A stretch of DNA of 64,000 nt. Origin: Anthoceros angustus (lineage: Eukaryota > Plantae > Anthocerotophyta). This document shows, piece after piece, positions 2,714 to 53,152 of this stretch. The translations under genes and the position numbers were made by a program. The notes under the pieces were generated by a model that was not told where the DNA came from, did no database searches, and saw only the letters and a list, made by a program, of their open reading frames with translations. Position 1 is the first letter of the stretch, and each line of letters opens with the position of its first letter. Location of the stretch: assembly GCA_010909165.1 (NCBI GenBank), contig VJWM01000305.1:33411-97410 (forward strand). The letters run 5' to 3'.

Positions 2714-2862
2714 TGTTTATTTTGCGAGGAGCGAAAAACAGACTTTGTAAAAGAGATTAAACAAAAATGTGTGTTTTACAAATACATATGGCCTCACTAT
2801 ATATGCAACTCAATAACGGTTCATATGATCAACCTAACTAGCGCACCCTTTCATATTTAACA
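2714..2862 (-). repeat. 3' LTR of Copia-1
   Basis: Matches 8645-8793 apart from one substitution and three small indels. Confidence 0.95.
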
Positions 2863-3599
2863 CTCCCTCTAAAGGTAAGCTAGGTTAGGTTAAACGCTCA
2901 CACCGCTCGAATACGTTACGCCGACTTCACGCTGTACCAAAGACGCCGAGCCTAGCGTAAACTCCGCCGCCATAAGAATCCTCGGACCATCCTCTTCACC
3001 ATTTCACTCAAGTTCGTTTGCGTCTTCATCCTCGAGCACGCCCACGCAGTAAATCAAAAACATGAGGACTCGAAGGGAACGAGCTACGAGTGCTCAAGTG
3101 TATCGAGAGAAGGAAAGAGGAAGGATAATCCATGAGAAGGATTCACCGGCTCGTCACCACTGGGGACACCATGTCCCACATGGTACTGGTACAATGCTTC
3201 ACGCCTAAAACATGGTCCTTTGTCGGGTCGGGAGGCGAGAATGGACGGAGAGCAACAACGGGATGCGCTACTCCATACATGCGGCCCCAATATTACGCCA
3301 AGCTAAAGCGACCATGGAAAGAATAACAGTGGAGCTTATCAAGTGAAGCAGGACACCACCGGGTGATCAAGGCGGGATGTGAAGCCCGCTATATGAGAGA
3401 AGTATCGCGTTGCCAGGAGATTAGGTCTTAAGGTAAGCTTCATCCTCCACGCAAGGCTGTCCATCTCCCTTGTTTTCATTTCACTAACAGGAAAATGTGT
3501 GAAGTGTCAGCAGCTCCTGTGTTCCTCCAAGGAAGACTGAGAACACAACACAATTCCCAAGGGAAACTCCGGTTTCCCACCCCACCCCACAACAGATAA

Positions 3600-5062
3600 G
3601 TTATCCGAAATACTTGGTATAGTCACCAGGCCTAGCCACGAAGATCTTTGGTAGTGTTTATGCTTTGCCAATCCTTCGCTAGCACGTCGCGACGTTAGAA
3701 TCTGTGCACATAACCCACCTTCACGACTCCACGCTCCACTACATCTCTAATGTAGTGATGTTGAATTTCTATATGCTTAGTGCGGGCGTGAAAGCGTGGA
3801 TTAGCGACAAGGGCTAAGGCGACATGTTATCACACATGATGGGGTAGGTGTCTGCTGAGTGCAGTCTAAGTCATGAAGGAAGGTCCTTTCCCATTCAGCC
3901 TCCTTTGAAGCATCATCAATGATTTGTACGCATACATGGAAGACAGGCTATGGAAGATTGCTTTTACGACCAATTCACGCGGAAGATAACAGAAGCAATA
4001 TGTGGAGAGCTTTTCTCGAATCACCGCCCGCCCGTGATGAACCCCTAAGGGTGAGTTTTTGTCGTCCTTCGATAGAAGAGTCCATAATTGTGGGTTCCTT
4101 TGAGATAGCGGAAAATCCGCCGAGCCAATGTGTTCTTCTGGATTCTCGAAATTGTGATACCGTGCTTACAGATCTGGATATCGGCCTTGTCGATTCGCTA
4201 AGAAGATTAGGTCGCCAATGCATGTCGAGGGACATCCTTCATGTCCTTAAGTTCTTCACAGGATTGAGGGCCTCAAGAGGTGTAAGTTTCACGCCCATAG
4301 CGAAAGGGTAGTTGAGGGTCTAGCCGTCAAGTTTGAACTTGCGCAGAATATCATTGATGTACTTATCTTTGGTGAACTATCGAGCCCTTCCTCTCGTACC
4401 CTTAAGATTTGAACTCCCAAACAGTATTTAAGTTCTCCGATGTCTTTCATCTCGAACTTTGTACTTAGCTTATGTTTAACATCAGCTAACAGAGTGTTAC
4501 TGTTTGTGGCAAGAATGACATCGTCAACATATAGGGCTAATATGACGAAGCCGCTTCCTTGACTGAGTCGGTAAACATTAGAGTCTGCTGTGCTTTGGAC
4601 TAAGGATATACTGAGCAGGTAAACATGCATAGTGATATACCAAATTCGGCCACTTTGTTTTAGTCCATATATACACTTGAGCAATTTGAGCACTTTGGTG
4701 GGATGTTCAGGATCTTCATATCCTTCAGGCTGTGCCATATACAGGTCTTCATCAAGGTCACCATAGAGGAAGGCCGTGCACACATCCATTTGCTGTAAGT
4801 CAAGGTTCAACTCTGCTGCCAGAGCCAGCAGTATGCGAATGGATTGTGCTCGAACAACTGGTGAGAATGTTTCCTGGTAATCTAGGCCCTCAACCTGGGT
4901 AAATCCTCTTGCCACCAGTCTGGCTTTGTATCTGGCAATCTCCCCTTTGGCGTTGAGTTTAAGTTTAAAAACCCACTTACAAGAGATGGCTTTGCGTCCA
5001 GGTGGGAGGTCAGCGATTTGCCAGGTCTTGTTCTTGAGCAGAGATTGGTATTCATCCTCCAC
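3600..5062 (-). pseudogene. Copia-1 reverse transcriptase and RNase H (frameshifted)
   Basis: ORF 4289-5062 has KARLVARGFTQVEGLDYQETFSPV, QMDVCTAFLYG and LYVDDV; RFHARTKHIEIQHHYIRD at about 3730-3800. Confidence 0.9.
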
Positions 5063-5429
5063 TGCTGCCTGCCACTTGGAGCAATCTGGGCCACGGAGGG
5101 CTTCCTTGTATGATAGGGGTTCCTCGGCAGGGAGGATATTCTGTATAGCACCAAAAACTGCCGAAGATGTTCGAAAATCGACGGATTGATAATAGGGTTC
5201 TAACCATCGTCCGAGGTGCCTATGGCGTGTGGAGCGTCGTGGGGTGGTTCAGAGGAATCAAGTTCGAATCTGAACGGGTGACATCCTCCTCATCAGGTCG
5301 GTGGGATATCCTCCTCATCACCGAATTTGAACTATCATTTGCGTGAGATCATCTGCTGGTTCACCGGGTCTCTGTAGGGTGAGGGGCAACAATGGGGAGC
5401 CTCAGAGTCATCTACATGCGGATGGAAGG

Positions 5430-7690
5430 TTAGAGGTTCTTCGCCATCCGTAGGGAAGGTGACAGTATCAAGCTTTCATTTGCATCTACTCCCTCTAAAG
5501 GGTTAGAGGGTGTGGGGTTGGTAGTCAGTGTGTGCAAAGGTTCTACGAAGGTGACACTGCGGGCAAGGACTAATGATTGAGTGTCAGGGTCATAGAGTTT
5601 GTACGCTTTCACATGTTCACTGTACCCCACAAAAAGTAGACGTTGAGCTCGGTCCTCTAACTTCTTGCGTTTTTCTGCAGGAATATAGGCGAAGGCCTTG
5701 GATCCAAATACTCGGAGGTGGAGCAAACTAGGCTTTCGATGCCAGAAAACCTCATAAGGAGTTTGTCCGGATGTAGTAAGTATCCTCATATATACGTGGC
5801 GTAACCACTCCGCCCAATACTCTTGAGGTAAGTTGGCATGCGTAGCATACTCTGGTCATTCCAAGTAGCGTCGATTTTTCGTTCAGCAACTGCTCGTTGT
5901 CGAGTGTATGGAACAATAAGTTGTCTTTGAATGCCTGTTCTTGAAGGTAATCATCAAAGGCATTGTTGACAAATTCTGTCCCATTATCACTGCGTAGGAC
6001 TTTAAGTAGGCATCCAGATTGTCTTTGTGCAAGTGGGAGCCACTGCTTAAAGTGCATGAGAGTGTCGCTTTTCAGGTGCATGGGAAAGGTCCAGAGTACC
6101 GACTAAAGTCGTCTGTGAGAGTTAGATAGTACTGTGCTCCACCTAGAGATGGCTCGTGGATCTTTCCAGAGATATCAGCATGCACAAGTGCAAGGCGATC
6201 TTGCTCTATGTGCGCTTTTGGGGAATGGTAGCTCTTCCGCTTGGCAAGGATGCACGACTCACGATGGGAAGATCCTAAAACAAGCGGTAGGGGTTCTCTG
6301 TGGCAACCTATGCGTGACATGTCAATAAGTTTATGCCTGTTAGCGTGTCCTAGCCGTATGCGCTACAGAGATGCTAAGCGAATATTGACGAAAGCGAAGA
6401 ATGACTTACGGGATGAGGAGAACACTAACTCAGTACAAGTCATGGTCGAGGATACCTCTAAATGCACATGCGCCAAAGAATTCTTCGTAGCAGCAGCATC
6501 ATCAGCGACACGTATCTCATACGTTCGAAGCTGCATGATTTTGCTCATTGACAGAAGATTCTTGGCCATTTCAGGTACAAATAGAACTCCATCGATCTTC
6601 AAAGTTGTGTTGTCGTCGAGAATGAAGGTACATTGCCCATGTCCTTCAACTTTAAGGCTAGTGTCACTCCTTTCATCACCAAGCAGGACTTTATCCTTCA
6701 TTCTGCAAATTGTTAAACTAGAAAATAAATTCTTGTTGTTGCAGATATGAGCAGTGGCTCCTGAGTCCAAGAACCAATCATCACTGGCGTGTGATGAAGT
6801 TGTCATACAGACAGTGAGGATCTTCACTGTAGCCTTAGAGTTTTCTCCTTTCTCTTTGACAACAACATGTGCTGACGGTCTTGTGGATTGTGGTCGTTGT
6901 GGCTCACCGCCTTTCTTCTTGCGGCACTCACGTGCCCAATGTCCATGACACCACACGATGCTCGTCCGGCACTGAGAAAGATGGGGCACCATCGACCCGA
7001 CCACCAGTGTCCTACCTTCGATTTCTTAAACCGAGTGAAGCACCTTGTCGGTTTGTTTCTAGATCCACGGCTAATAAGCGTCCTTGCTCTTCCGAAAAGG
7101 GCACCAATAACTTCTTCAAGCTTAATGGTGAGGGTTAGGGGAGGATGCCGGTGAGCAATGGATGGGTCCATTTGTGTGGAGATAAAATTTTGGTAGGAGG
7201 AGGCTGCTCAATAGTTGAGCAACGCCTCTACCTCGTCCATCTTGCAGCCAAGGGCAACTATTTGAGCTCTCTATGGCGGAACTTGGTGACATGAGATGCC
7301 ACTTTGTCTCCCTCCCTCATACGCAGCCCATAGAATTCTGGCACATAGGGTAAGAATATTACCCGATGTGGCTGCAAGTTGATTCCAAATCTCCGAAGCG
7401 GTGAGATACTGACATCGCACGAGGTCGATCCGTGCCTCCAATAAGTAGAGCAAGTGCTATTGAATTCGATTGGTCCCACTTTTGGATGTCATTAAGCGAA
7501 GGAGGCGAGGAGTCGTGGTCGTTTCTTAAGTGTAGCATCGACTACGCTCCGGACACCTCAGCAACTGAGTGGACTTCATTCGAACTTTCCGGACTTGGTA
7601 TCTTGTTCCATTGAACGATCCTTTCTTTGAGTTCGAGGTAAAGGATGGTCCTGCAAGATTATGAGGCATCCGAGCGAAGCCATAGGCGAG
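5430..7690 (-). pseudogene. Copia-1 gag (DUF4219/UBN2-like), protease and integrase (frameshifted)
   Basis: FNGTRYQV.KVRM near 7600; WFLDSGATAHIC in ORF 6363-7004; LVHADISG, LRSDNGTEF and LRVFGSKAFAY motifs. Confidence 0.9.
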
Positions 7691-8644
7691 GTGGTATCGC
7701 CGGATCAGAAGTTGAGACGACCAAGTTGTTGTGTCGATTGATCTATAGACGCTACATGCGTAATGTGACCTTCCTTAAGTTATGACTCGTGGAAGAGAAA
7801 ACATTAATTACAATGTTACCGTGCTGATTGACTTTCCTTGCAGGACTTCTAACTAAACCGTCGCGTATCCAGATTGTGTGAAGAGGCGCGACCGGTGGGT
7901 TCTGGATCCTGAGGTCCTGAGATGCGAAAGGGGATCGACGCTACAACTTGATGACTGCTCGAGTGACATGGAGGATGCCAGGCGACGCTTCATCAAGATT
8001 GGTGACGCTCCCAGCCTGTCGGCGCCTCCCGCCGCCGCTGGAAATGGTCAAGATGCAATCACCGGGAGAGATTGCTTGATTTCTCCTCCTTGGCGCCCAA
8101 GCTCAATCTTTTTCATGAGATCAACCACTTCATTGATCGGTATTTGATTGAGCTTGCCGCCGTGATTGCTCGTCCCCGAGTTATCAAGGTGATCGACGTC
8201 TTTATTTCTTCCTGATTCGACAGCACTTCAGATAAGGATCTCTCGACCCTAGTGACGCTTGCTAATAGTATGGCTACGGCGTCTTGATTTCCCTTGTCAC
8301 TGGGTGCAGGACAATTGCATGGTAGTTCTGGACGGGAGGCGCCGTGAGGGTTTGTTGATCGGTGATAGAACAAATCAGGGTTCTGACCCCTCTTGGCGCA
8401 TCTTTCTCTGTACAGATTGTCAACCATGTGATTCTGTAAAGTATGGACGTGATCTGGTCCCGAAAGCAAAGAAAAGTCCTTGACCCGGATGTAGGGTAAT
8501 TCTGTTCATAGAGGTCTAGAATAGTTTCTAGGCGCATCGGTGGAGGAGAAATTCCTCCACACAGTGCGGCCGCCTTCTATACCACCACCTCGCGGGCTTC
8601 CGCGACTCGGCATCATTCGGGAGATAGAATGGGGTTCGATACCA

Positions 8645-8793
8645 TGTTTATTTTGAGGAGCTAAAAAACAGACTTTGTAAAGAGATTAAACAAAAATGTG
8701 TGTTTTACAAATACATATGGCCTCACTATATATGCAACTCAATAACGGTTCATATGATCAACCCTAACTAGCCGCACCCTTTCATATTTAACA
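8645..8793 (-). repeat. 5' LTR of Copia-1
   Basis: TG...CA ends, adjacent PBS, flanked by the TSD. Confidence 0.95.
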
Positions 8794-8805
8794 TTTGCGA
8801 AGATT

Positions 8806-9297
8806 GTGCTAGGGTTGGTAAATTACCAAAGGACTTCTTATTTCAGCACCAACTTCCTGCAATTTTTGTGGAAGATTTCGAGAGGAGCCAAGCCAGATTG
8901 GGGCACCATCATGTATGAGGCCTACATCCACCACCGGGAGAAGCTCCTCAAGCCAAATTCGGTGGATGAGGAAGGGCCAAGGCCCTGCTACCTTAGCACC
9001 TATTTGGTGCATTTGTGGGAAACGGAGGGACTTCTCACAAGCAAGGAGTTGGAAGATGCTTGGCATCCTTCGGAGATAATTCATCTCCAGCCAAGCTTGG
9101 AAAGGCCCTTGCCTTTTGCATTGAGGAAGACAGTGGGAGGTCAGACCTCCACAAGCATGCTAGGAGCAAGGGCGGAGGATGTAGAGGCAACAAGGTTGCC
9201 GAGTCTTTTCCCCACGAGGCAAGGGAGGAGAGGAACAGGAACCGCCGAGGAAGGCCGAATGGTAGTCTATGAGAGGAGGACTACCACAGAGGGGTGA
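8806..9297 (+). CDS. ORF X copy 1 (C-terminal core), unknown retroelement accessory protein
   Basis: LGLVNYQRTSYFSTNFLQFLWKISRGAKPDWGTIMYEAY...YLSTYLVHLW; continuous with 2556-2713 across the Copia-1 insertion. Confidence 0.65.
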   Translation: MLGLVNYQRTSYFSTNFLQFLWKISRGAKPDWGTIMYEAYIHHREKLLKPNSVDEEGPRPCYLSTYLVHLWETEGLLTSKELEDAWHPSEIIHLQPSLERPLPFALRKTVGGQTSTSMLGARAEDVEATRLPSLFPTRQGRRGTGTAEEGRMVVYERRTTTEG

Positions 9298-11554: not shown

Positions 11555-12340
11555 TGAGGTCGAGATGCCTCAATTCACTTGCTTTGCCGGGCACCAACCC
11601 CGAGATTTGGTTGATTTTCTGCAAGGCGGAGGAGGAGAACATCCAATTGGGGTGGGTGTATGGCCGCCAATGGGCCTACACCAATTTGGAATTGATTGAG
11701 GAGTGTTACATCAACCTCCATCAGCCCGCCGCACTACGAAGGAATGCTAGAACGATCCGCTGTCGGACTTCAAGTATTCGTGTATGGAAGACCGAGGAGG
11801 AGAGCTCGAATTGCTCTCCTCGAAAGGTCGAATGGAGGAAGAGGACAGCCCTCTCGACATCCCGCAGAGTTCCTTGACATGATGGATGGAGGAGGAAGGC
11901 CCACGCCAAGAATGGGTGGAAGACCGAGAGCATCAAGGAGTCAAGTGGAGGCTCTTCGCAAAGATTGTGCTGGGGTTGGTAAATTACCAACGCACTTCTT
12001 ATTTCAAAGACCAACTTCCTCCAATTTTGTGGAAGATTTCCATGGGAGCCAAGGATTGGGGACTATCATGTATGAGCGTACATCCACCATCGAGAGAAGC
12101 TCCTCAAGCCAAATTGTGGATGAGGAAGGGCCAAGGCTCGCTACCTTAGCACCTATTTGGTGCATTTATGGGAAACCGAGGGACTCCTCACAAGCAAGGA
12201 GCTTGAAGATGCATGGCATCCCTTTGAGGTCATCCATCTCCGAGGTTGGAAAGGCCTTTGCCTTTGCATTGCGAAGACGGTGGGAGGTCGACTCCACAAG
12301 CATGCTAGAAGCAAGAGGAGAAGGTTGAGGCAACAAAGTT
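11555..12340 (+). pseudogene. ORF X copy 2 (frameshifted)
   Basis: EMPQFTCF..NPEIWLIF..AEEENIQLGWVYGRQWAYTNLELIEECYINL followed by KWRLFAKIVLGLVNYQRTSYF. Confidence 0.65.
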
Positions 12341-12699: not shown

Positions 12700-13450
12700 G
12701 GAGGGGTGAGGTCGAGATGCCTCAATTCACTTGCTTTCTTGCGCTCAACCCCGAGATTTGGTTGATTTCGGTGGGCGAGGAGGAGAACATCCAATTGGGG
12801 TGGGTGTATGGCCAATGGGCCTACACCAATTTGGAATTGATTGAGGAGTGTTACATCAACCTCCATCAATCGGAAGCGCCTGCCGCTAGGAGGAATGCTA
12901 GATGATCCGGGCCGTAAGTATTCAGTGTATGGAAGACCGGAGGAGGAGAGCTCGGAATTGCTCTCCTCGAAAGGTCGAATGGAGGAAGAGGACATCCCTC
13001 TCGACATCCCGCAGAGTTCCTTGACATGATGGATGGAGGAGTGAAAGACGCCAAGAATGGGTGGAAGACCGAGAGCATCAAGGAGTCAAGTGGAGGCTCT
13101 TCGCAAAGATTGTGCTGGGGTTGGTAAATTACCACTTCTTATTTCAGACCAACTTCCTCCAATTTTGTGGAAGATTTCCATGGGAGCCAAGCCGGATTGG
13201 GGACTATCATGTATGAGCGTACATCCACCATCGAGAGAAGCTCCTCAAGCCAAATTCGTGGATGAGGAAGGGCCAAGGCCATCTTAGCACCTATTTGGTG
13301 CATTTATGGGAAACCGAGGGACTCCACAAGCAAGGAGCTTGAAGATGCATGGCATCCCTTTGAGGTCATCCATCTCCAGGTTGGAAAGGCCTTTGCCTTT
13401 GCATTGCGAAAAGGCGGTGGGAGGTCGACCTCCACAAAATGCTAGAAGCA
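12700..13450 (+). pseudogene. ORF X copy 3 (frameshifted)
   Basis: Direct repeat of about 11550-12330 with the same motifs. Confidence 0.65.
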
Positions 13451-18818: not shown

Positions 18819-21800
18819 TGAAGATTTTATGTGAATTGAATTAATAAAACACAATTACATTATTGATAGAATTGAAAGATCAAATAAAGAGTAACTTGCT
18901 TATGCTTAAAACAACCTAATTAAGATACCAAGTGTTACGTCTACTCGTAAGAGTCACAACCCTACCGAAAGGGTACTAGGTGACTAGACCTAGTTTACAC
19001 ATAGGTTAACTAAACTAAGGTAACATAACCCTAGCATGAGTCAACACATAAACAATAATTATTCTTTCACTCCCACTTGTTGATCATGACTTGTACAGTC
19101 TTCTTTTTCGCGTGGGTTCCTTGTGTTGTCCCTTGACGGTCTGTTTGTCTGGCGGCAGATTGGTTACGCCCTAGTTGCTGCACGCGGAGTACCATAGACC
19201 GAGCCACGCCCACCTCCTTGGCGAATAAAAGCATGGAGACACCCGGTGTGAAGTGGTCTCGCAGAAGGTGCGCACTCAACAATAGCATACGCCCGTGCTT
19301 GAGTGTAGTTCTCATTATCCCGTGGCTAAGGAGTGCGAGAAGGAGCATCATGTCTTCGCCTCGCATCCGAGACTCCGGCCCAAGCGTAGAAATCAGCCTA
19401 GGGACCGCATGGGCGGGTTTACCACAACTAGAACTGCTGTTCCTCACGATGTGAGCACTCCACCGTAGGGTACCAGGCAATCGCCTCGTGGAAGGCCGCG
19501 AGGCACGACCAAGGAGGTCCTAGCAAGGCGAGCCACGCCAGACAAGTGAGCCCATGGCCTCGCAGCGCGCCTCATCCGCACTCCAAAGCGACAAGAGTAA
19601 AGGCCCATGTCATAATCCCGATTTTGGCTTTTCCGAGAATGAGACTAACCCTCGTGAAGAGCCTAGCTTTCCTAAGCTGCAGACTGTTCAAGGAGACAGA
19701 TCGCTCTTATGGCTCCATCAAGCATCCGCGCAGCCCTCCGTGGTATGTGGTTTATGTGGGCGCACAAAGCCGTGATGAGACGTGTCAAGGTCGAAATGGC
19801 TGGCTTACCCATTTCATGTGGTCAAGACTTATAGTAAGATCCCGCTTCAATACTCGTTGCAATCTTTTATTGTGCATGTGAGATGCTACACTAAGCTCCC
19901 ACCGTCTGTGGTGATCCAACATACACCTGGAAGAAGAATCGAGCCTCCAATCAAGAGATTTCGTGCCGTGCAAGGAGAGTGGAGGAAAACCACCGCCTAT
20001 AGCAGCCCCGATCCTTCAAGATGAGGAGGAGAGTCACCAGGCCCTGGAGAATCGAGTCCGATGGGGATTCCTATTCTTTGAAGTCTCGTGATGAGACAAA
20101 CTTCAACGACTACACCGACGACGAATGCTCTTCTTCTCGGCCAGCTAGAATGCTGCCGAATGACTTGACTTTATGCACTACTACCTAGGGACTCGAGGAG
20201 TCACCTAGGCCTAAAAACTTTACATGCTTCTCATGTAGATCCCAGAGCCTTTGTGAAAATGTCACCGGGTTTTCTTGTGTTGCTATGTATTCCGAGATAT
20301 TGTGCTTGCAGCTAGTAGCTCTCTAATCCAAAGGTATTCCACGCCACATGCTTTGTCCCGAGTGGAAGACGGATTTTCAGCTAAATTGACCCTTGGTTGT
20401 CGGTTCGATTTTGTGCAAGCAACTCAATGCCAAGCTCAAAATGCAGCTTTAGCCAAATAACCTCCTTCACGAGTAAGTACTCTATATTCCGCCTGTGCTT
20501 GAGAGTGCAATTGGTTGCTTTTGCTTGACCAACAAATAGGTCCTCCAAAGATAGCTCACCACATAACCTCGAAACCGACCTCCTCGTATCTATGTCACCG
20601 CATAATCGAATCGGTGTATACGAGGTCGCCACACCATCTTTGTGAGTATACACAATACCCTTTTGGTGTGCCTTTCGACACGGAAAAACCTCTTAACACA
20701 AGTCCAATGTGTCCGCCTGTGGTTTTAGAATCGGGATGAGCACTTGTCGAGTACGCCACTGGGTCGTGTTGTGTTGGCAGCATATATGAGTTTGCCCACA
20801 CCTTGCCTATGGCACATTTCTCATATCGTCCTTCCTGACCGTGTAATCGACATATCTTTGCTCAACTTGAGACCACTTGGAAGAGGTGTTGCAGGTTTGG
20901 CATCTTTGAGTCCTAATCGCCTGCACTTTCCAAGAGATATCTGAGTCATGGTAAGGATCCTTTTTTCCTATACCGAATGTGTATTCCTAAGCAACTTTGC
21001 AAAGGTCCAAGGTCCGACATCTTGAATTTTTGTGCCAGATTCGTGATCGAGAGATAAAGTCCAGTGTTGCTTGCAAGGATGAGGTCATCGACATAAACTA
21101 AGTAACAGATTACATCATTCTTGATGTATACGTATAAGTCACCTTACTTTTGTAAAACCTAGAGCTCGCAACTCCTTGTCCAAAGGCAAGATTCCATTTC
21201 ATTGATCGCTTAAGTCCATAGAGGCACTTAATTAGTTTGCAAGCATAATCCTCCTTGCCGTTAACCTCATAACTGTGGTCTGCATGTAGATCTCGTATCA
21301 AGGATTCCATGCAAGAAAGCCTTCACATCAAACATCCTGAGCTCGTAGTCCTTGTCCAGCAATCGCACACATGGTCCGAAAAGTAGCAAGCTTGACGGGG
21401 AGCAAAGGTTTCGAGGTAATCTAAACCGGAATTTGTGTGAAACCTCTAGCAACTAATCCGCCTTGTATCTATCAAACGATCCATCCGCCTTGACCTTCAA
21501 TTTAAAGACCCATTTACATGACACGCTTTGGGCAACTTTGCTAGTTCCCAAGTTCCATTCTCGATAAGAGAATCATATTCGATCGGATTGCCTTTCTCCA
21601 TTCCTTGTGATCGCACCGAGAGCTTCCTCATAAGACGTGGCTCTATGGGATCTAATCGTGGCGGCATAAGCCTTCACATGAGAAGAGGTAATCAAGTCGG
21701 TGCATGATAGTAGTCGAGGTCGACGCTCACGTGTAGGGTAACGTCGAGTAGCTCGCTCGTGGCAGAAGTACATCATTAACTTCCTCTAATTCCTCGTCAA

Positions 21801-30600: not shown

Positions 30601-33600
30601 GAATCCTTTGGGTTGTTGCCGAATGGCTCTTTCTTGACTTGTGACAACTTCCCTTCGGGGCTTTTCAGCGCTGTTCTGAGGTCGTTGGAGCTTCTCCTGA
30701 CCTTTTCGGCTTGGCTGCCTTTTCATCGGACTCCATGGCCTCCAATTGCCACTTGGTCCACTGCTTTCTTCCGGCCATGTCTTGGGCCTTGACCTCCTCT
30801 TGGCACGCCCACAAGGAGGCTGCTAGGTCCCCTAGCCCCTTCAAATCCACACGGCTGAGTGCTTCACAAGCACCCAAGAATTCTCCTAGGGGTCCTAATT
30901 CCACCCCTCTTCTTCTTTGGAAATTTCCAGCCTCGCACTCGGCCATCATGCGGGCGCGGGCCCCTTCACCGTCGCTCCATCCGCTCTCCCACCCAGCGCG
31001 GGAGATGGTGGCGCCGCCGCGGCACTCGTCCGCTTCTCCTTCCCTTCCGCCACCAGAGCTGCTTTGCTGGGCGAGGGGTGCCCGCCACCGTGGTAGGCTG
31101 CTCCCCCCACTGGTAGTCTCGCCTACCTACCATGGTAGGTCGCCTACCACGGTAGCTGCCCACCCCTTGGGTAGACCGCCTCTACCGGGTAGTGACGGGT
31201 GCCTCCTGTAGGCACAAGGAGATGGTGGGGACTCCCACCCCTTGGGTCACACCCTCCCGTGGTCCTTCTCTCATAGACTACCATTCGGCCTTCCGGCCTT
31301 CGCTCTCCCTTGCTTCCCCTGGGGAAAGGATTCCCACTCGGCAACTTTGTCCCGACCTTCTCCTCTTGCTTCTAGCATTTTGTGGAGGTCGACCTCCCAC
31401 CGCCTTCCGCAAAAGGCAAAGGCCTTTCCAACCTCGGAGATGGATGACCTCAAAGGGATGCCATGCATCTTCAAGCTCCTTGCTTGTGAGGAGTCCCTCG
31501 GTTTCCCATAAATGCACCAAATAGGTGCTAAGATGGCCTGGGCCCCTTCCTCATCCACCGAATTTGGCTTGAGGAGCTTCTCTCGATGGTGTATGTACGC
31601 TTCATACATGATAGTCCCCCAATCCGGCTTGGCTCCCATGGAAATCTTCCACAAAAATTGGAGGAAGTTGGTGCTGAAATAAGAAGTGCGTTGGTAATTT
31701 ACCAACCCCAGCACAATCTTTGCGAAGAGCCTCCACTTCAGCTCCTTGATGCTCTCGGTCTTCCAGCCATTCTTGGCGTGGGCCTTCACTCCTCCATCCA
31801 TCATGTCAAGGAACTCTGCGGGATATCGAGAGGGCTGTCCTCTTCCTCCATTGACCTTTCGAGGAGAGCAATTCCAGCTCTCTTCCTCCGGTCTTCCATA
31901 CACTGAATACTTCTCACGGTCCAACAAATGGGATCCGTTCTAGCATTCCTTTTAGCGCGAGGTCGCTCGATTGATGGAGGTTGATGTAACACTCCTCAAT
32001 CAATTCCAAATTGGTGTAGGCCCATTGGCGGCCATACACCCATCCTAGTGGATGTTCTCCTCCTCCGCCTCAAAAATCAACCAAATCTCGAGGTTGCTGC
32101 CCAGAAAGCAAGTGAATTGGGGCATCACAAGTTCACCTCCTCGCGGCGCAGCCCGCTTTCGCTTTTCCTTTTCTCCTCGCGAGGAGGAGCCCTTGCGGCG
32201 GCTCCTTTCCCTTGCCTTTCCACCTCGAGGCATGGCACCTTCCTTACTCCCCACGCTCCTAGCAAGAGGATTACTTCCCAATTTTCAGCGTGTGCTCCAA
32301 GCTTCACCTCCAAACACTCCTTTTCTCGCAGTGCCGACTCCCGACTGAGGCACAAGCACACGTTCTCTTGAGCCTCCGGCCGCCGATTTCCTCTTGATTT
32401 CTTCTCCAGCTGCGCAGTGTGGTCGCGATTTTCCTCCTTCTACTCTCACTCTCCTTCACCTTGCCTGGCCCAACGCGCCGGATGCCTCCTTCAATGTGTC
32501 CCTTTTTCCCAGTGTTCGAAGAGCTTCTCGGTGCCCTGGAGCGCTCAGTGCTTGCCGCCTCCTCTTTCTCCTTTCCCACTAGGGGTCTTCTCCTTCGCGC
32601 GCCGCCTTCCTCTCGTTCGCGGGTCGCAGCGACGACGGCAATGGCAGCTTCTCCTTCGGGCTTCTTTGCGCTCCAGCTTCAGTCTCAGTCTTTTGGGAAG
32701 TGAGGTCGCCTCAGCTCGAAGAGGAAGTTGGCGCTGCCCCAAACTGCACTTTGCCTTCCTTGGATGACTGCCACCTGGCGGCCACACAACCCTAGATTCT
32801 GTGCATCATTCACAAAATCCTAATCTGATCTATACTACCTATTTTCCTACTCTGCCTAATTAATCTCTTGCTAATTACTCTTATATATTTATCCCCTATT
32901 GATGAGCATATATATAGTGGATATCCCCTTTATTCTAAGTTTCCTTTTTAGCCGAGATTTGTCAGCCTACCGCGGTAGTCTACGGGCTTACGCGTAGTCC
33001 GCCTTACTCGCGGAGTGTGGCACCTACGGTGGTGATGCCGACCTACCAACCTTCGACTCTTCGCTGGGGTCGCTTGACCCGTTTTCCTCTGGGATATCCT
33101 CTTTGCCTTCCTAACAATATTCCACAGCTCTAGTTCCAAGATCTTGAAGTTTTCCTGCATGTTCCTCTTCAATCGGTCTTAGCCAAAAAATCAAACTTGT
33201 CTTGGCGGTTTGAATTTGGTTGCCCAAACTTTTCGTTCCACACGGACCCATCAATGCAATTGCCAAATCCCACGTCGACCGGCCTGGGTTCCCAGTCGCC
33301 CGCCTTAACCCGGCAGTGCTGTATGTATGATGCTCCTTTTAAGGGCGGCTCCATCACCAAACCGCTTTGCCTCCTCCTCCTTCACTGCGCCCCTTACACC
33401 TCCTAACCAATTCAGGGTCCCAATCCTGCGGCAGCTCTAATTCCCTTGTTTGTCCTTGCGTGGCCTTGCACTCATTGCACGGGTCCCAAGTTCATGTAAT
33501 TCCACGTTCTTCCATGAAGCCAAGCTTGACTCCTTCACCAATTCCCATTTCGAACTTTCCAATGATCCATGTTTGGCCATGGAGCAAGCACAATCTCAGT

Positions 33601-40400: not shown

Positions 40401-42545
40401 ACCTTGTAGGGTCCCATCCACCTCAATCTCAACTTTCTGGAAAATCTAAGTATCGGTCATTACGAACACCAAATCTCCAGCCACAATCACTTCTCTCTTT
40501 GAAGCTTCCCATGTCGATGCAAGCCGTTGTTTGGATCTTGTAGGTCTCCTCAAGTGCCTCTTCTCGGTCCTCCTCATAAGTCGCGAAAGCCTCCAATCGC
40601 GCTTGATCGTCCTCCACTCATCCTTACGTCCTCCATGATTCGATGTGTTGGAATCTCAAACTCAATTGGTAACACTTGGTGACATCCGTAGGTCGGATAG
40701 TAGGGCGTTCGTTTCGTGGTTACCTTCTCGGTATCGATATGCCCAAAGTCTTTGAATGAAGCTTCGTGTCGATCATACATGTGTGTGATCACCTTAGTCA
40801 AAATGGTACCCAATCGTTGGTCTTCTCGTGAGGCCATTTGCCTTGGGTTGTAAGCGTTGTCTTGCGGTGTCGTATGTTGAAGTAGCTGGTCAGCGACTCA
40901 ATGGCGATGTTCAAGAAGTGAGTTCCTCGGTCACTCACCAACTCAAGGACAACCATACGTGTGATGATGTTCTCAAACAAAAATTTTTGTTGTCGGGCGT
41001 CATCCTTCCTTGTCGCCTCCGCCTCTACCATCTTGGTGCGATGTCGGTGGCCACCAATATGTATTGCTTAGAGTCCACAGGTAGGTGGGCGAATCGATAA
41101 CAAAGTCGATTCCCACTTCTCAAAAGGAGGCGAGTGGCGGAATGTAGGTCGATGGCCCTTTGTGTGGATGTCGGCCTCCTACCTGTGACACGCGTCGCAT
41201 CTCCTAATAGAATCCCAAACATCACGTTGCATGGTAGTCCACCAAAAGCTGTATCCAAAATCTTCTTAATCGTGACTGCGGTAATGCCTCCTGCCTCTCC
41301 ATGTAAAGCCTCAATCACCAAAGCGCCTCTCAGGGCTCCGGACACCTTCGTATCTTCTCATCCGCCCCATCTTGTACAAGATTCCATTCCTCAAGCGATG
41401 AGGCTACCTTATGAAGAAAAAGCGCTCGTCCTTCCCTACTCAATCCATTGGGCATGATTCCTAACTCCGGGAATCTTGAACTTCTAGCGCCTTGCTTGCA
41501 GCCCTTCTCTATCCCTTGAGAAACGGGCGGCGTTGCGCCTTGTGAACCGGCTCCTTGCTGATCTTGGTTGAGGACTCATGGCACGTCCTCCACGATTCTC
41601 GCACTCTGCTGCTATCTATCGTTAGGCGTCTCTCCGTCATTGTCCACGAAGTCGATCTGAACTTCCTCTCCGTGATTAGGATCCCTGTGTGGCTGTACCC
41701 TACGGCCACCTGGCGCTGCTCTTATGCGGGGCTCACTTGCCCTTCGTTACGTAACTTCCTCTTCATCCTCTGGTGATGTCGCGACCAACTCCTCGTCGAA
41801 ACCTATCGTCTCCGGACCTTTCGATTGTTCTCAACCTCGAGATGAAATCCAGCGTTGATGTGTCTCTTACCGCTCGCGTCTCAACATCAAAATCAAACTC
41901 TTGCGGCAAAAGAATCCATCGAGCAATTCTTCCGACAAATCCGGCTTGTTCACTAGGTACTTGGTATAAAATGATCAGCGTGGAAGGTTACCTTGCGAGA
42001 GGTAGTGGCGAAACTTCTTGCATGCGTAGATGATTCCCAACGCCTCCCTCTCGATCGTAGTAATTTCTCTCGCGTCGATCAAGCCCGCGTAGAAGATAGG
42101 ATGATCCCTCTTCTCTTAGTCCTTACGGCTCGAGAATAGCCCCAAGCGCATCTGCGGACACATCCACGTACGTGCGTGAAATGGCTCCCAATTTGGTGGT
42201 CTCAAGGTGGGTGCCTCCACCAAACTCCTCTTTAGTTGTTGAAGCAGCTTCTTCTCTTTCCATTGTCCACTCAAATGCTCGTCCTTCTTTGTGAAATTTG
42301 AGTTAGGACGGCTGCCTTCTTTACAAAAATCTTTGTGAATCTCTAATAGGACTAACCCTATAAGCTCGACACTTTGTTGTCAGGGTGCATCCATCTCCGC
42401 GATCACCTTGACTTTCTCCATATCCACTTGGAGTCCTCTTGCTGAAACTCGATGAGCGAGGAGAATCCCCTCCGTCATCCCAAAAAAACACTTCCCAGGG
42501 TGAAGTTTTAGGCTGGTCTCACGGCAACGTTGGAAACACCGGCCC
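37440..42545 (-). mobile_element. Gypsy pol (RT end, RH, INT; 40190-42545) followed by a divergent ORF X paralog plus coiled coil (37440-39500)
   Basis: KLHPGKCFFGMTEG, SGRIARWILL.QEFDF, LVSDRGTHF and RWMGPYKVEEVYENG motifs; downstream HWAYSNVELVESCY, LKWKLF.RIVLG and LSTYLVQL match ORF X. Confidence 0.8.
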
Positions 42546-42625
42546 AGATATGAAAAATAAAACCTAACTAATATGAACAGAACTAAGAGGCATCTGCCCC
42601 TCTTCTAACCGTGGACCCAAAATTT

Positions 42626-45600: not shown

Positions 45601-48318
45601 ATTGTAGATGGGCTCGATCCTAACACAGACCTAGGTGAGTCTCTCCCTATTCCTAGCATAGATGCTGAAGAGATAGTCAACCCTGGATCTCTACCCACCT
45701 TACCAGAAAACATACCGGAGCCAGAACCTCCTCGTAGGTCTGAACGTATTCGTGCACCACCATCTCAATGGAAAGAACCACCATGTGCTTCTGTCGACTT
45801 TCGTCGTTCAGTGGGAGCCTGTGCTCCTACCCTTCCTCCTTGTGCCCTCTCTGTTGTCATTCCACCGAACCCGGCCATTTCCTCACGTGTTTTTCCCGAC
45901 TGCAGGCTAAGTGGAAAAAGCTAGCTGATGACTTAATACAACAACGATTCAGGCACTTGGGAGCTTGTTCCTCGACCTCAGAATCGCCGACCGATCACCT
46001 GCAAATGGGTATTTAAGCACAAACTCAATGCAGATGGTAAAATTGCAAGATATAAGGCACGCTTGTGCGCACGTGGTTTCACTCAGATACCTGGTCTGGA
46101 CTTCCAAGAAACATTCTCCCCTGTGGTGCGTTCCCAATCCATCTGACTCATGTTGGCCTTGGCTACTAAGCATGATCTTGAGCTTCAGCAGATGGATATG
46201 AAAATTGCTTTTCTCCATGGTGTCCTTGAGGAGGAGCTGTACATGGAACAACCGGAAGGTTATGAAGACACTAAATACCCACACTTTGTATGTAAGCTGA
46301 TAAAATGCATTTATGGACTCCGTCAAAGTGCTGAACGATGGAATAAGAGACTAGATACCTGTCTTAAAGGTCTTGGCTTCCGCCAGAGCCCTGCTGACCC
46401 CTCACTGTATGTTTATGACCATGGATCTGCATATGTGCTCCTCGCTATTTATGTGGATGATGCCATCTTTGCAGCAAATGACAAACAACTGTTAGAACGT
46501 GTTAAGCACATGATGCAAACTGAATTTGAGATGACTGATGTTGGTGACCTCAAGTTTTGCCTTGGCATTCAAGTTCTTTGAGTACGAGATGAAGGCTTGA
46601 TCATCATTCATCAACACAAATATATTTCCGAGATTCTGATTCGTTTCAACATGGATAAAGCACATATGGCCTCTACTCCTGGAGCCACCGGCCTGAACTT
46701 TACTCGGGAGGACAGCCCTACAGTGGCAGCTGATGTAGATGATATGAAGGATGTCCCTTACCGTCATGCAGTGGGCAGTCTTCTTTTTGTTAGCAACTGG
46801 ACTCGGCCGGATATCACATACTCTGTGAACACAACATCGCAGTTTTTACAGTGCCCTGGGCGGAATCACTGGACAGCTGTTAAGAGTTTTCAGATACCTG
46901 AAGGGTACACTTTACCTTGGCCTATGTTACAAGCGGACTGGTAATCCTCCTACCCTCCATGGTTTTGCTGATGCCGACTGGGCGTCGGATGGTGACTCTC
47001 GCAAAAGCCTATCCACATATGTCTTCATTCTGTCCTCCGCTGCTGTTAACTGGAGCTGCAGAAAGGAAACATCTGTAGCCCTATCAAGTACTAAAGCTGA
47101 GTACAAATGTCTCACTGATGCTGCAAAAGAAGTGGAGTGGGAGAGAGCTTTTCTAACTTCTGTTCATGCAGAGCAGACAGATCCTACCACTTTATATTGC
47201 GACAACCAATCAGCTTTGTCTTTAGTTGAGCGTCCTCGTTTTCACGCTCGTACCAAGCACATTGAAATTCAGCACCACTATGTCAGAGATGCCACAGCCA
47301 GAGGTATTGTCAAGCCTTCTTACATACACACAAATGCCAACACTACTGATATTTTGACCAAGTCAGTTCCGAAGCACAAACATGTTTCCCATGCAGAAGG
47401 TCTTGGTCTAGTGGATTACATGCCCTACTTTAAGAGTTCTTAGGGCTTGTTTACATGGGGAGAGGACCCCCTATAGATTTGTCCTCAGTCCTCAGTTCCC
47501 TACTCTCCTGTGTCTTCTTTTCTTCCTGCAGATGTCACAGATGATGGTCAGGCCCTCAGTGGGTGAAGCTTTAGCACAAATACCTAATCGTGATGGCATG
47601 GTCTAGTCGTTGTTTGTGTTTACCGTTAGTGGGAGTTCATGGCAAAGTTCATTGCGGTCAGTCACCTTCATGCACTAGATTGATTTTACGTCCCCTACTG
47701 CCGTAGAGAGCGTCGGTCCTCCTCTCTTCGAGTTGCGTCGAAGTCTTTCGGATCTGGTCGTACTGCCCATAGATATCGGCTTGGATAGCTTCCCAATTGT
47801 CATGGCTCACACTTCCAGCAACTGTCTCCTCCCTTGTTCTCTGACCGTCTTTTTCCCCGTCGTCGCCTTTGTGTTTGGAATCTTTTCCTTCCTTCCTCTC
47901 TTCCTGCCTCCGTCTGTCACGACTTTGGTGAGCCGGCCTCGCGCAAAGGGACAATGCACACATAAGAGGACTAGAAGATCACTAGGGCGACAAAGACCTT
48001 GTAGGAGCAGTCGGTGCTTATTTCTGACAGAGCGGATTCAGTACCCTTCATCGCCGCCGCCATCGCTGTCTGCAGAAGGAAGGACGAAGACTGATTAACC
48101 CCCTTTGAAGACGCTTAAACCCTAAACCCCTTTTTAACCCGTCCAGGTTAAGTGGGAGTGTTGATTAGATAACCTGTTAGGGTTAAATAATGGCTGGTTC
48201 ATATAGACATATATAGAAGTTTCTAGTTAGATGTTACTTGCGGTATAAAAGGTACAATGTTTTCTTTTATCATACTACTCACAATTTTGCTCTCTATTGC
48301 TTTCGCTGCTCTTCTTCA
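42626..48318 (+). mobile_element. Ty1/Copia element lacking its 5' LTR (Copia-2)
   Basis: gag VWRSRMK (43200), Zn knuckle CNWCGLPGHWAREC, WYLDSGATAHIC, integrase ORF 44881-45924, RT YVDDA, RH RFHARTKHIEIQHH (stop 47443); PPT AAGTGGGAG then TG-starting LTR at 48159 (its end is approximate). Confidence 0.85.
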
Positions 48319-48319
48319 T

Positions 48320-49561
48320 TCATCACTTCCATATCGATGGAAACTTATCATGTTTTTGGGTCTTTGGCCTTTGCATTTATACCAAAACAGAGACGTTGAA
48401 AGCTGGATGACAGGGCTAAGTCTTACCTTTTTCTGGGATATTCTGAAGTGTCCAAAGCCTATAGGCTGTTTGACCCAAAATCTCTACATGTCGTCCTTGC
48501 CAGGAGTGTGACCTTTGACGAACCAACCTCACCAAGGTCTGGTCCCAGTACTTCACTGTTGGAGATGCGTGTCACTAGCCTATCCTATCTATGAGCCTAC
48601 TCTCTACACACACATTTAGATGAAACCTGTGTGTGTTTTCCTGCCTTCAGAGGTCACCCATATAGGGCGTAGGTTCAAATCCCTCCTGCACAATGCACAG
48701 ATTGCCAGTGTCAGTTCTCACCCATTTGGTTCAGTGGATGAAGCTGTAGCTTACCTATTTAGTCGTGAACAGACAGGCATTAGTCGTGAGCACTATACCT
48801 TCCAGAGGAGCCTTCCACACAAAACACACATCTTGCTCCGATAAGCGCAAATACAGCAGTCACGCTTACCATGAGCTCTGTTTTCAGTGGGAGACTTGGG
48901 TTCTGCAGCTTGATTCTTCAGAGCAGCCTGTCTTTTGTTTAAGTCGTCCAGCTGCATAGCCACCTCTGCCCTCTTCACATCGAGGAGATCCTCCACTTCC
49001 TTCAGTGTTTCAGTTACCGCCTTTACGTGATCCAGCCTTGCTCACTATGTTGTTGTAACGTGGAGTCTTTTGTCGACCGCCTTCTCTCACGCAGTATTGG
49101 ATCCCTCAATGGTTGTAATACTAGGCAATGCGAAGACTCCGAGGACTTCAACTCAACCACAGGATCCCTTGACAGATAGGTTGGCTGAGCTGGGGCTGGC
49201 TCCCGCATTGCAATTGGGAGGATTTCTTCTTGAGGTGGAGCTGCCTGATCTGCTCTTCGTGTCGGGTTTCTTCCGCGCATGGGAGCTACACCACTGCTGC
49301 TGTTGCCTGCGCGCTTCATTCTTCGTGGCTTGGGGCTGAGAGCGATGTTGCCAATTTTCTACTCCAGATCGCGTCTGTGTAAAGGCCAGTTAAACCACGT
49401 TAGGTTTAGTGGGAGTGTTGGGGTATGAAACCCAATATGGTTTAAACATATAACTTAGAGTTAGGTTGACTAACCAACAGACACTTTCAATTTTGCTATG
49501 TAAACTCTTTTTCATTATTATTATGGTTGTCTTCGTGAAATATGCTTCCGCAACTTTTACA
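48320..49561 (+). mobile_element. Internally deleted Copia remnant (Copia-3): integrase tail, 3' region and 146-bp 3' LTR
   Basis: VFGSLAFAFIPK...LDDRAK...GYSEVSKAYRLFD...ARSVTFDE at about 48350-48525; PPT TAGTGGGAG; LTR 49416-49561 TG...CA. Confidence 0.75.
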
Positions 49562-50153
49562 TCTCCCAATCTGGAGGTTGTAACGTTGGAGCGCTCACCA
49601 AACTGTCCTTCAACTGCTGAAAAGCCTCCTGCCTCGCGGTTGTCCATTCAAAGGGTACATCCTTCTTGGTCAACTGTGTTAACAAGGCTTCCTTTTTGGC
49701 GAAGTCCTTGATGAACCTCCTGTAATACCCTACTAGTCCTACAAAAGCTCGTACCTGCCTCACCGTTTGTGGGGCATCCATTTCCGCTATTACTGCTACT
49801 TTCTCCCTATCTACCTGCAATCCTCGTACAGAGACCCGATGTGCTAACAAAATGCCCTCCGTCATACCAAAATAACACTTCCCCGGATGAAGTTTCATGT
49901 TCGACTCTCTGCACTTCTGGAAACACTGTCTCAAATGGTCCAGATGCAGTTTCCTTTTCCCAAACACGCAAAAATCATCCAGAATACCTCCATGAACTCC
50001 AAGAAATCTCGGAATATAAGCTCACTACACGCTGAAAGTGGCAAAGTGATTACAACCCGAAGGAGGAATGCGTAGGTGCCCCAATCTGTTGTGAATGTCG
50101 TCTTGTCTTGGTCTTCCTTCCTCAGCGAAATCTGATTGTGCCCAGAGTATCCG
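49562..50153 (-). mobile_element. Gypsy RT fragment
   Basis: DGYSGHNQI...KTTFTTDWGT, (F)LDDF with 1-nt deletion, KLHPGKCYFG, RAFVGLVGYYRRFIKDF, APTLQPPDW. Confidence 0.9.
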
Positions 50154-50783: not shown

Positions 50784-53152
50784 CTAGAAGAACGACCCCG
50801 GAAGACGTTGGTTGCAAACCATGCTGGGTATCTGGTGAAACATGAGAAGTCACTTGTTATCATCCGCAGACTGGCTTGTCAAAGATCTAGCACGGCAAGC
50901 ACTCGGTTAAGCTGTACCTTTTCACCAAAAAATATTTTCGTGTTGTTAGCTATAGATTCAAAAAACTTGAGCTCTAGGAACTGCGGTGTCAACTTCAACT
51001 TGTTCACTTCAGCTTCCTTCGACGCTCTGTTGACAAAGCCAAACATGATTTCAAGGTGAAATGATAGAACATAAGCTCTAGGAACTGCGGTGTCAACTTC
51101 AACTTGTTCACTTCAGCTTCCTTCGACGCTCTGTTGACAAAGCCAAACATGATTTCAAGGTGAAATGATAGAACATAAGCTCTAGGAACTGTGGTGTCAA
51201 CTTCAACTTGTTCACCTCAGCTTCCTTCAATGAGCTACTGAGAAGACCAAACATGGTTTCAAAGTAAAATGATAGAACACGAGCCCTTTTGCTTATCTGT
51301 CAAGTACCTGTAAAAATCCGAGTCAGCAAGACTCTTCGGCATTGATGTGTAGATCTCATTTTCAATGAACTGCTGTCTCTTAATACTCTCTTTCTCCATT
51401 AATCGCTGCTCCATAGGGATCTTACTAACTTGAGCAGCTTGCTCTGCTTCTGTGACAACCCTTTTCTTCGCCGTATCTGCTTCTTTCTCAATAACCTTTT
51501 GCTTTTCAATTGCTATCAGAACCTTCCAGGAGCTGCACATTGAGTGAAAATTTTGAGATTGAGAAGAAACTGAGTAGGATATTGAACGCCAGAAATTTTA
51601 CCTTGTTTCGTTCTTCTTCCATTGTTTGATAATTCCGGGAAATAGACTCTGGAATAGTCGGCTTAGTAACCCGGACACTGATAATCTCAAGACCCTGTGC
51701 ATATCGAGTACAGTCCCGTTGAATTGCCCTTTTGACCTTTTCATCAATCTGCAAAACATATCCGAACATGACAGTTTCTTGAGACAGTCCATACTCCTCC
51801 ACGTTGGCCGGCCTGAACAGAACACTCGCAAAACCACAGTACCTCACCTGATCGAACATACCAATGTAGACTTCTTGAAGGGAATGAGAGCTGCAAAACT
51901 GGTTAACAAAATTCGTGATGGATTTTATCGTATATCCATATTTGTCATATGTAACACCATAATTTAGAATAGTCTCGTGAACATGGTCCTTGTTTAGCCG
52001 GTTGACAAACTGCAGAGGAATGCTTCATAAATTATCACTACAATTAGCAGGAGACAACTTGGAACAATTAGCAGGAGACAACTTGGAAGTTGGCTGTGTC
52101 TTGTATGGTGATGCGTCTTGACTTGCTACTTTTCCCACATATAACGAAATCAGACTTGCTACCGGACATGCTACAGAGACCAAGTTACCTCGACCTTGTC
52201 AAAGAAGATCATTACTCCACCTTTTGTACCACATGGGATGTTCCTAACCTGATATGATTGGAATGATGTGAGCACACAACTTGTCCTGGAATGATCAAAT
52301 AAGTTATCCCACAAAAATGGGAAATTCCTGTCCACACTGCAAGGTACCAACACTTTCGTCACCTCATTCATCAATTTTTCAAGTACCCGCTTGTTAAGTT
52401 TACCTCATCGGTTTGAATGGTAACTTGGATAGGATCCACGCGGGTGACGAAAGGTAGCATAACATGGAAACCTACCGGACTTGTTCAAAAGCACAGCAAG
52501 CATTTAGTCACATGAAACTACAGCTCCTGAAACTGAGCTTAAAAATCAGGATGCTGCTGAATTTATTGAAATTTCTCCCCAATAACATTGGACGCAACAG
52601 GTGAAAATGTCTGCCGCAACAAGGCACCGCCTCTCCAGTACACGCCCACATGACCTTCCGGAATCTGATGCAGAACTCCCAGGTGACTGCCGCTCACTGA
52701 AAGACACGCTACGACCTACAAATCCATGGCGAAACACCAGTCATCGAGACTGTTACAGCTCGGAGGAGATCTTGTCGTAGTGACGGCGGTCATCTCGACG
52801 CGGCGCTTGGACGTCTATGGGTTTGACCTCTGCCTCTGCTGGGCCACTGGGTGTACATTGTCACTTCTGGTTTGCGACGACAGCTTGTACACTACTGTTG
52901 CAGACTGGCTTGACATACATAATGACCACCATCGTACCTGACAGGATCTACGACACAAGAGATAGAAGTGCAACTGGCATTGCCAGACACAGCCCCTCAT
53001 GAGGCATCACACCAACAAGAACTTTGAAGAACTTGTCGAGGGCAACTTACCGCAGTGCTCACTGATACGGCAGTCAGTAGAACATCAAGTGATCTCAAGG
53101 ACGATACTTGAGCGGGAGCTCCTCGAACTGGCACTCGACTGGAAGTGTCCAT
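50784..53152 (-). pseudogene. ERLIN: ERLIN/SPFH (band 7) family gene, 9 exons, probably damaged
   Basis: [75 protein letters not shown]. Lesions: exon 2/3 phase mismatch, compensated frameshift, triplicated acceptor, non-conservative substitutions. Confidence 0.8.
50970..51281. repeat. 3 x 104-bp tandem repeat spanning an ERLIN intron/exon junction
   Basis: Units start at 50970, 51074 and 51178; the first two are identical and the third is diverged. Confidence 0.95.

Follow-up and report, generated by a model that had tools for sequence, protein, structure and literature searches.

Does the 3′ part of a plant Copia retrotransposon hold a spliced transcription unit that runs opposite to pol, and would such a unit encode a protein? 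The question is raised by a 64,000-nucleotide stretch of Anthoceros angustus DNA (assembly GCA_010909165.1, contig VJWM01000305.1, positions 33,411–97,410 of the forward strand; hereafter the window, in whose coordinates all positions are given). The window is rich in long terminal repeat (LTR) retrotransposons, among them Copia-1, a Ty1/Copia element at 2714–8793 on the minus strand, and the Copia elements Copia-2, Copia-3 and Copia-4. A preliminary description, made from the letters of the sequence, had proposed that splice signals on the antisense strand of Copia-1, between pol and the 3′ LTR, define an accessory gene whose layout is shared with Copia-2 and Copia-3. The explanation that we prefer, tentatively and with less than even confidence, is that this region would hold an antisense spliced transcription unit of a kind already known from Copia elements, with little or no coding capacity. 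Transcription, opposite to pol, would begin in the 3′ LTR of Copia-1 or next to it, and one or two short GT-AG introns would be removed from the transcript. Such a unit would belong with the 3′ LTR-initiated, multi-exon antisense transcripts of an Arabidopsis Copia clade. Rather than a conserved protein, it would more likely yield an RNA with a regulatory role or, at the most, a small peptide that changes fast. The present yield is a set of candidate splice junctions, not a demonstrated gene.

Anatomy of Copia-1 and the signals in its spacer

The two LTRs of Copia-1 align with each other, and both have TG...CA ends (Table 1). They are flanked by a 5-bp target site duplication (TSD), TTTGC, at 2709–2713 and 8794–8798. 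Within gag-pol, the Pfam domain RVT_2 was found at 4292–5248 (E = 3e-66). Upstream of it in the sense of the element lie Pol_BBD (6366–7025) and a region (5517–5991) that matches, by tblastn, the SH3_retrovirus-bearing open reading frame (ORF) of Copia-2, so that integrase precedes RVT_2 as in Ty1/Copia elements. The LTR pair differs by one substitution and about five single-base indels. Because the LTRs are near-identical and differ mostly by single-base indels, and because pol is cut across frames, the sequence suggests that Copia-1 is a recent insertion in a noisy assembly; a broken frame in Copia-1 is therefore weak evidence. The primer-binding site (PBS, within 8600–8644) reads TGGTATCGAACCCC on the sense strand instead of the usual initiator tRNA-Met sequence TGGTATCAGAGC, which may reflect assembly noise or a different primer. 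Copia-1 was inserted into a member of another repeat family: its flanks, 2526–2713 and 8794–9294, continue one unit, which recurs at 11696–12328, at 12918–13284 and, inverted, at 31274–31939.

The region 2863–3600 is the spacer of about 740 nt between pol and the polypurine tract (PPT) of Copia-1, as judged from what bounds it: on one side the end of the pol frame, which is open down to 3510, with the conserved end of RNase H near 3620–3700, and on the other the PPT abutting the LTR. The PPT/LTR junction, CTCCC(A/T)CT, is common to Copia-1, Copia-2, Copia-3, Copia-4 and a related element on contig L011 of Logan run SRR33208241. A palindromic TATATA at ~2805–2812 in the 3′ LTR of Copia-1 could serve either strand. 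The short LTRs (2714–2862, 48168–48282, ~49413–49559, ~18850–19070 and 3175–3232 of L011) also share AACCTAAC(T) near their PPT-side end, and an inverted copy of this motif lies just inside the Copia-1 spacer, at 2881–2893.

The antisense strand of Copia-1 is the plus strand. Every signal listed for it in the preliminary description, namely the first GTAAGC donor, the CGCAG acceptor, the ATG that opens MRTRR... and the 58-nt intron-like stretch, is present at the position given in Table 1. The donor of the first intron-like stretch fits the consensus at 8 of 9 positions, and the last exon base would be 2874. Only 12 nt of the internal region precede this donor, and a first exon would therefore need to begin in or next to the 3′ LTR; the position is the one expected if the first exon lay in the 3′ LTR.

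Table 1. Positions of the structural features of Copia-1 and of the putative antisense features in the spacers of Copia-1, Copia-2 and Copia-3 (a slash marks a putative splice boundary).
Feature	Element	Position	Strand	Description
3′ LTR	Copia-1	2714–2862	−	149 bp, TG...CA ends; aligns with 8645–8793
5′ LTR	Copia-1	8645–8793	−	149 bp, TG...CA ends
PPT	Copia-1	2863–2874	−	complement read on plus strand; directly adjoins LTR end
gag-pol	Copia-1	3510–8500	−	order integrase, RVT_2, RNase H; split into pieces in different frames
Intron-like stretch 1	Copia-1	2875–3049	+	175 nt, AAAG/GTAAGC ... CGCAG/T; GT 2875–2876, CGCAG 3045–3049
First open antisense piece	Copia-1	3062–3205	+	ATG 3062, MRTRR..., 48 codons, basic N-terminus; TAA 3206–3208
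Second open antisense piece	Copia-1	3209–3343	+	45 codons, same frame as MRTRR piece; contains ILRQAKATMERITVELIK; ends ...ITVELIK
VEL/SSE pattern	Copia-1	3329–3347	+	two halves one base out of register
Third open antisense piece	Copia-1	3344–3431	+	next frame, SSEAGHH...CQEIRS; TAA 3429–3431, one base ahead of donor
Intron-like stretch 2	Copia-1	3433–3490	+	58 nt, AAG/GTAAGCTTCATCC ... CTAACAG/GA; pyrimidine-rich
Putative last antisense exon	Copia-1	3491–3599	+	overlaps open tail of minus-strand pol frame (open to 3510)
Intron-like stretch	Copia-2	47526–47583	−	58 nt, TTAG/GTATTT ... CTGAC ... TGCAG/GA; contains AGCTTCACCC
Intron-like stretch	Copia-3	48686–48754	−	69 nt, ATAG/GTAAGC ... CTGAC ... 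TGCAG/GA; contains AGCTTCATCC
Open antisense pieces	Copia-3	48796–49319	−	98 codons from ATG 49319–49317 (49319–49026); frame break; 82 codons (49041–48796)

An intron-like block in the spacers of related Copia elements

Copia-2 and Copia-3 both lie on the plus strand, and their antisense strand is the minus strand. The reverse transcriptases (RTs) of Copia-1 and Copia-2 are about 50–70% identical. Copia-2 ends in an LTR at ~48168–48282. Copia-3 is an internally deleted fragment (48400–49540) that adjoins Copia-2 and is nested inside a Gypsy RT; all that remains of it is a piece of the integrase SH3-like region, the spacer and one LTR, in that order. The Gypsy RT/RNase H gene is parted by the two insertions into pieces at 42119–42604 and 49560–50021 (minus strand), which are 74% identical over 61 residues to each other's family.

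On its minus strand Copia-2 has a CAG ending at 48070, an ATG at 48063–48061 and, further on, an intron-like stretch of the same length as the second stretch of Copia-1. The best local alignment of the Copia-2 and Copia-3 spacers pairs 47610–47523 with 48787–48683 and scores 49, against 29 ± 3.5 for shuffled sequences (maximum 41). Within it the donor, a CTGAC at −23/−26 from the acceptor and the acceptor itself (TGCAG/GA) are all in register. By this alignment, the intron-like block is homologous between Copia-2 and Copia-3; outside it, the Copia spacers could not be aligned. The best local alignment of Copia-1 with Copia-2 falls at the equivalent spot (3411–3466 with 47598–47542). The block thus has an equivalent place in Copia-2 and Copia-3, and a weak match to it lies there in Copia-1; of the two putative GT-AG pairs of Copia-1, it is the second that would correspond to it. 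Together, the shared block of Copia-2 and Copia-3 and the same motif at a like place in Copia-1 would fit an antisense spliced unit borne by the lineage. A retroelement can retain introns on its antisense strand, since they are not spliced out of its sense genomic RNA. From these signals we infer that the antisense strand may be transcribed, that the GT-AG pairs may be used and that the transcript might have some role in control of the element.

Motif counts point in the same direction. AGCTTCAYCC occurs three times against 0.32 expected, each time in a Copia spacer and with GGTA just ahead of it. Taken on their antisense strand, the four Copia spacers make up 2.7% of the search space, and 3 of the 11 AGGTAAG matches in the window (P = 0.0026) and 3 of the 4 matches to GGTAAGCT (P about 7e-5, for a pattern picked after looking) fall there.

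Several observations nevertheless weigh against an antisense spliced unit. The Copia-1/Copia-2 alignment of the block scores 33 against 28.5 ± 3.3 for shuffled sequences, which is not significant. The motif counts that reach significance rest on motifs picked after looking, and sites that fit the general donor consensus (at least 8 of 9 matches) are not enriched in the spacers (3 of 50 sites, P = 0.15). Nothing in Copia-2 or Copia-3 clearly corresponds to the first intron-like stretch of Copia-1, and the CTAAC of the second stretch, 2–6 nt from the AG, is too near to be the branch point of that acceptor. Conservation runs through the interior of the block (AGCTTCAYCCACTGA), which is more than splicing alone demands. 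Lastly, sense frames are open across the block, over 64 codons in Copia-2 (47412–47603) and 74 codons in Copia-3 (48620–48841). The layout that the preliminary description ascribed to all three elements is therefore borne out for Copia-2 and Copia-3 as a homologous donor–CTGAC–acceptor block; Copia-1 has the motif at a like place, but its match is not significant. Likewise, AGCTTCAYCC does recur in the intron-like stretches beyond expectation, with the reservation that the motif had been chosen after looking.

The spacers themselves are unusually long in four different Copia elements of the window (~720–1120 nt); that of L011 is ~190 nt. Copia-4, whose pol extends from ~20200 upward on the minus strand, has a 1.1-kb spacer (19071–20190) without similarity to those of Copia-1, Copia-2 and Copia-3. 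No further copies of the Copia families were found within the window besides the LTR pair. Beyond the window, a metagenome scan with the Copia-1 RT returned only distant Copias (31–46% identical), and the best word-search match to this RT (78%) came from Logan run SRR33208241, in contigs that end before the 3′ end of the element. The best match to the Copia-2 RNase H (50%) was L011. A Copia of Adiantum (L012) was set aside as a comparison since a nested insertion interrupts it.

Folding gave no stable structure for the block on one strand or the other (z between −1.5 and +2.2), and neither Rfam nor ARAGORN recognized a known RNA family or a tRNA in it, which argues against a structured RNA element. 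A tRNA T-arm-like GGTTCAAATCC in Copia-3 was dismissed. Near the PPT of Copia-2, the search for a telomere-like box gave one exact plant-type AAACCCTAAA (48117–48126), not above chance.

Coding capacity and competing explanations

If the antisense unit encoded a protein, the spacer would hold a real spliced accessory gene of the Copia lineage. The product would be a small protein of the nucleus, basic at its N-terminus and partly helical, with a VEL-SSE that resembles a SUMO-interaction motif, and the frames would be broken here by decay or assembly noise only. We consider this unlikely, although several features speak for it. When both strands of the window (128 kb) were searched for the DNA pattern of VEL followed by SSE within 0–4 nt, only two occurrences were found, against a shuffle mean of 0.02, and both are antisense in Copia spacers: one in Copia-3, where the halves are in frame (49157–49137, minus strand), and one in Copia-1, where they are not (Table 1). 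In Copia-1, one frame is open from 3053 to 3343 apart from a single stop, and the next frame then runs to the stop that abuts the donor. The coiled-coil-like ILRQAKATMERITVELIK, which the preliminary description had put in another frame than MRTRR, is in fact in the same frame, with that single TAA between them. The antisense reading of Copia-1 would therefore have to cross one stop and one frame break to reach its terminal TAA. About two breaks in 370 nt are comparable with the break rate of pol in this element, and the prevalence of single-base indels between its LTRs suggests assembly noise. The two open pieces of Copia-3 are separated by a single frame break, and the shorter contains a helical-looking part and a CxxC-x6-CxxC motif. 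A stop codon abuts the donor in Copia-2 and Copia-3 as it does in Copia-1, so that on a coding reading the small intron would fall in the 3′ untranslated part. Put more generally, these features would describe a plant Copia lineage with its own antisense gene, transcribed from the 3′ LTR and spliced, for a small, fast-evolving nuclear protein with a SUMO-interaction-like VEL-SSE and an intron right after the stop; in this general form, too, the proposal seems to us doubtful.

What tells against a protein is, above all, that the open stretches look ordinary. The Copia-1 spacer contains no intact antisense ORF; its longest antisense open stretch, 65 codons, is unremarkable against shuffled sequences (p = 0.79), and those of Copia-2 (106 codons) and Copia-3 (111 codons) are marginal (p about 0.09). 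Open stretches of 106–149 codons occur on the antisense strand of the elements other than Copia-1, but the sense strands are equally open, with 139 codons in Copia-2. The antisense strand is purine-rich (0.53–0.57), and the coiled-coil look of its frames can arise because such a composition alone yields stop-poor frames rich in K, E and R. There is no detectable similarity among the antisense open stretches of Copia-1, Copia-2, Copia-3 and Copia-4; the VEL-SSE is placed differently relative to the helical part in Copia-1 and in Copia-3; and the shared block has no coding pattern in any frame of either strand, its antisense frames carrying stops. Ten antisense pieces scanned against Pfam (E up to 1) were assigned to no family, TRP28 included; the matches were weak and at chance level, with none for the first open piece of Copia-1 and a CRIPT-like one for a Copia-3 piece (E = 0.0045). 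The 98-codon ORF of Copia-3 drew a blank in a word search, and HMMER, with a limit of E = 0.001, matched it to none of 1.84 billion representative proteins. These blank searches are weak evidence because the species and its close relatives seem to be missing from the public data. The element-encoded accessory gene of the preliminary description is thus not demonstrated: Copia-1 has no intact ORF, the ORFs of the three elements are dissimilar, and the profile searches that it had suggested for the product, in Pfam and with HMMER, found no relative. A short, fast-changing antisense protein is conceivable, judging from the frames described above.

The 139-codon sense frame of the Copia-2 spacer (47679–48095, plus strand) has a long F/L/P-rich hydrophobic run that resembles an env-like membrane anchor. 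We did not retain it as env-like, given that the frame is a pyrimidine-rich tract mirroring the purine-rich antisense strand and that its length is marginal against shuffled sequences (p = 0.054).

It is also somewhat unlikely, in our judgment, that there is no antisense gene at all, the splice motifs having arisen by chance and the block being residual homology or kept for the sense strand, whether as a cis element in the genomic RNA, as the tail end of pol or as a short ORF past it. The location would suit a sense role, as the block lies about 80–170 nt past the pol stop of Copia-2, the open sense frames of Copia-2 and Copia-3 that cross it give loosely similar peptides (SVGEALAQIPNRD and SVDEAVAYLFSRE) and the pol frame of Copia-1 is open to 3510. 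General donor-like sites that are not enriched, ORF statistics at chance and the lack of protein relatives are likewise as expected if no antisense gene exists. However, the two peptides match at only 6 of 13 positions and show no excess of silent changes, the corresponding sense frame in Copia-1 has stops (only 19 codons are open), and the sense strand has no stable RNA fold. Moreover, the pieces that are kept coincide with a donor, a branch-like site and an acceptor, which would be an odd coincidence for a sense element, and recurrence of the precise motif GGTAAGCT is confined to the antisense strand. A further alternative, that the spacer is a captured (transduced) fragment of a host gene in reverse orientation with introns left over from that gene, we regard as very improbable. 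Gene capture by plant LTR retrotransposons is documented (PMC7264820), but the spacer has no similarity to any protein family or database protein, and a like position in three different families is unlike a one-off capture.

Neighboring features and relation to known antisense systems

Elsewhere in the window, positions 1–2560 are a tandem duplication of a ~1280-bp unit whose copies are 96–100% alike, small indels being the main difference. The palindrome CCTACCATGGTAGG forms arrays in it, and again at 13.6–14.7 kb. A 104-nt unit is repeated three times in tandem at 50964–51275 (85–100% alike). The clearest host gene is an intact, single-exon DUF1191 ORF of 404 residues at 59172–60386 on the minus strand (E = 4e-40); the public gene collection holds no exact match to it.

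Extra antisense ORFs between pol and the 3′ LTR are known from Ty3/Gypsy elements, such as gene23 of Grande, RIRE2, and Retand with TRP28 (PMC7264820, PMC11963269). In the Tat/Retand group, the spacers measure 2.9–6.6 kb and the antisense ORFs exceed 600 bp, mostly with Transposase_28 (TRP28) (PMC11963269, PMC7264820). The putative Copia-1 unit resembles these in orientation and in position, and neither has an established function. It differs in that it belongs to a Copia element with a spacer of 0.7 kb and open stretches no longer than 65 codons, and in that it lacks TRP28; introns, moreover, are not a described feature of the Tat/Retand antisense ORFs. The Copia-1 spacer contains neither an antisense ORF above 600 bp nor Transposase_28 (PF04195) or another named domain, by which the Tat/Retand type (aORF-3R) is recognized.

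Within Copia, the REXdb survey took account of ORFs from 250 codons upward only and, among them, distinguished just the sense-strand eORF-3′F of SIRE as a lineage trait (PMC6317226). Short spliced antisense units would escape that survey because of its cut-off. Like SIRE, Copia-1 has extra sequence past pol; unlike in Copia-1, the extra ORF of SIRE is on the sense strand. No long sense ORF of the SIRE type follows pol in Copia-1, the longest sense stretch in the spacer being 72 codons (p = 0.72).

A spliced antisense gene with a proven product exists in retroviruses: the HBZ transcript of human T-cell leukemia virus type 1 (HTLV-1) begins in the 3′ LTR with a short first exon, which an intron follows, and encodes a basic leucine zipper (bZIP) protein. 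The putative unit of Copia-1 would be similar in having its body between the last sense gene and the 3′ LTR, a start in the 3′ LTR and a short first exon followed by an intron. HBZ, however, is a protein of an animal retrovirus, whereas the Copia-1 unit is a candidate read from the DNA of a plant element, and the two have no sequence relation. A protein gene of this kind, unlikely as we think it, would give plant Copia elements an equivalent of HBZ and other antisense genes of retroviruses. PMC7264820 and PMC11963269 also treat retroviral antisense genes. If the Copia unit were protein-coding too, it would be the first accessory gene of such a type in Copia.

The closest parallel lies within Copia itself. 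The preliminary description knew of no spliced antisense gene conserved across Copia families, a statement that is outdated: in Arabidopsis, numerous multi-exonic, non-coding antisense Copia transcripts have been reported, which generally start in the 3′ LTR (bioRxiv 10.1101/2024.04.02.587720). They occur in a subset of related families at levels comparable with those of sense RNA, and the authors suggest a regulatory role (bioRxiv 10.1101/2024.04.02.587720). The kind of unit considered here is therefore already known. The candidate in Copia-1 shares with the Arabidopsis transcripts its Copia context, its orientation antisense to gag-pol, the absence of a convincing ORF and its recurrence in related families. 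Several exons would be a further likeness, and so would a start in or next to the 3′ LTR, at which the donor just inside the internal region and the TATATA of the LTR hint. The Arabidopsis transcripts were seen with long reads, whereas the Copia-1 unit is recognized by its DNA signals; and they are described as non-coding, whereas some copies here may carry a short ORF (the VEL-SSE motif). If the antisense unit is real, short-LTR Copias outside Arabidopsis would also give ~0.7–1.1 kb of their length to an antisense spliced transcript, and self-regulation or interaction with the host by this route would then seem to be ancient and common to the lineage, within the most widespread superfamily of plant retrotransposons.

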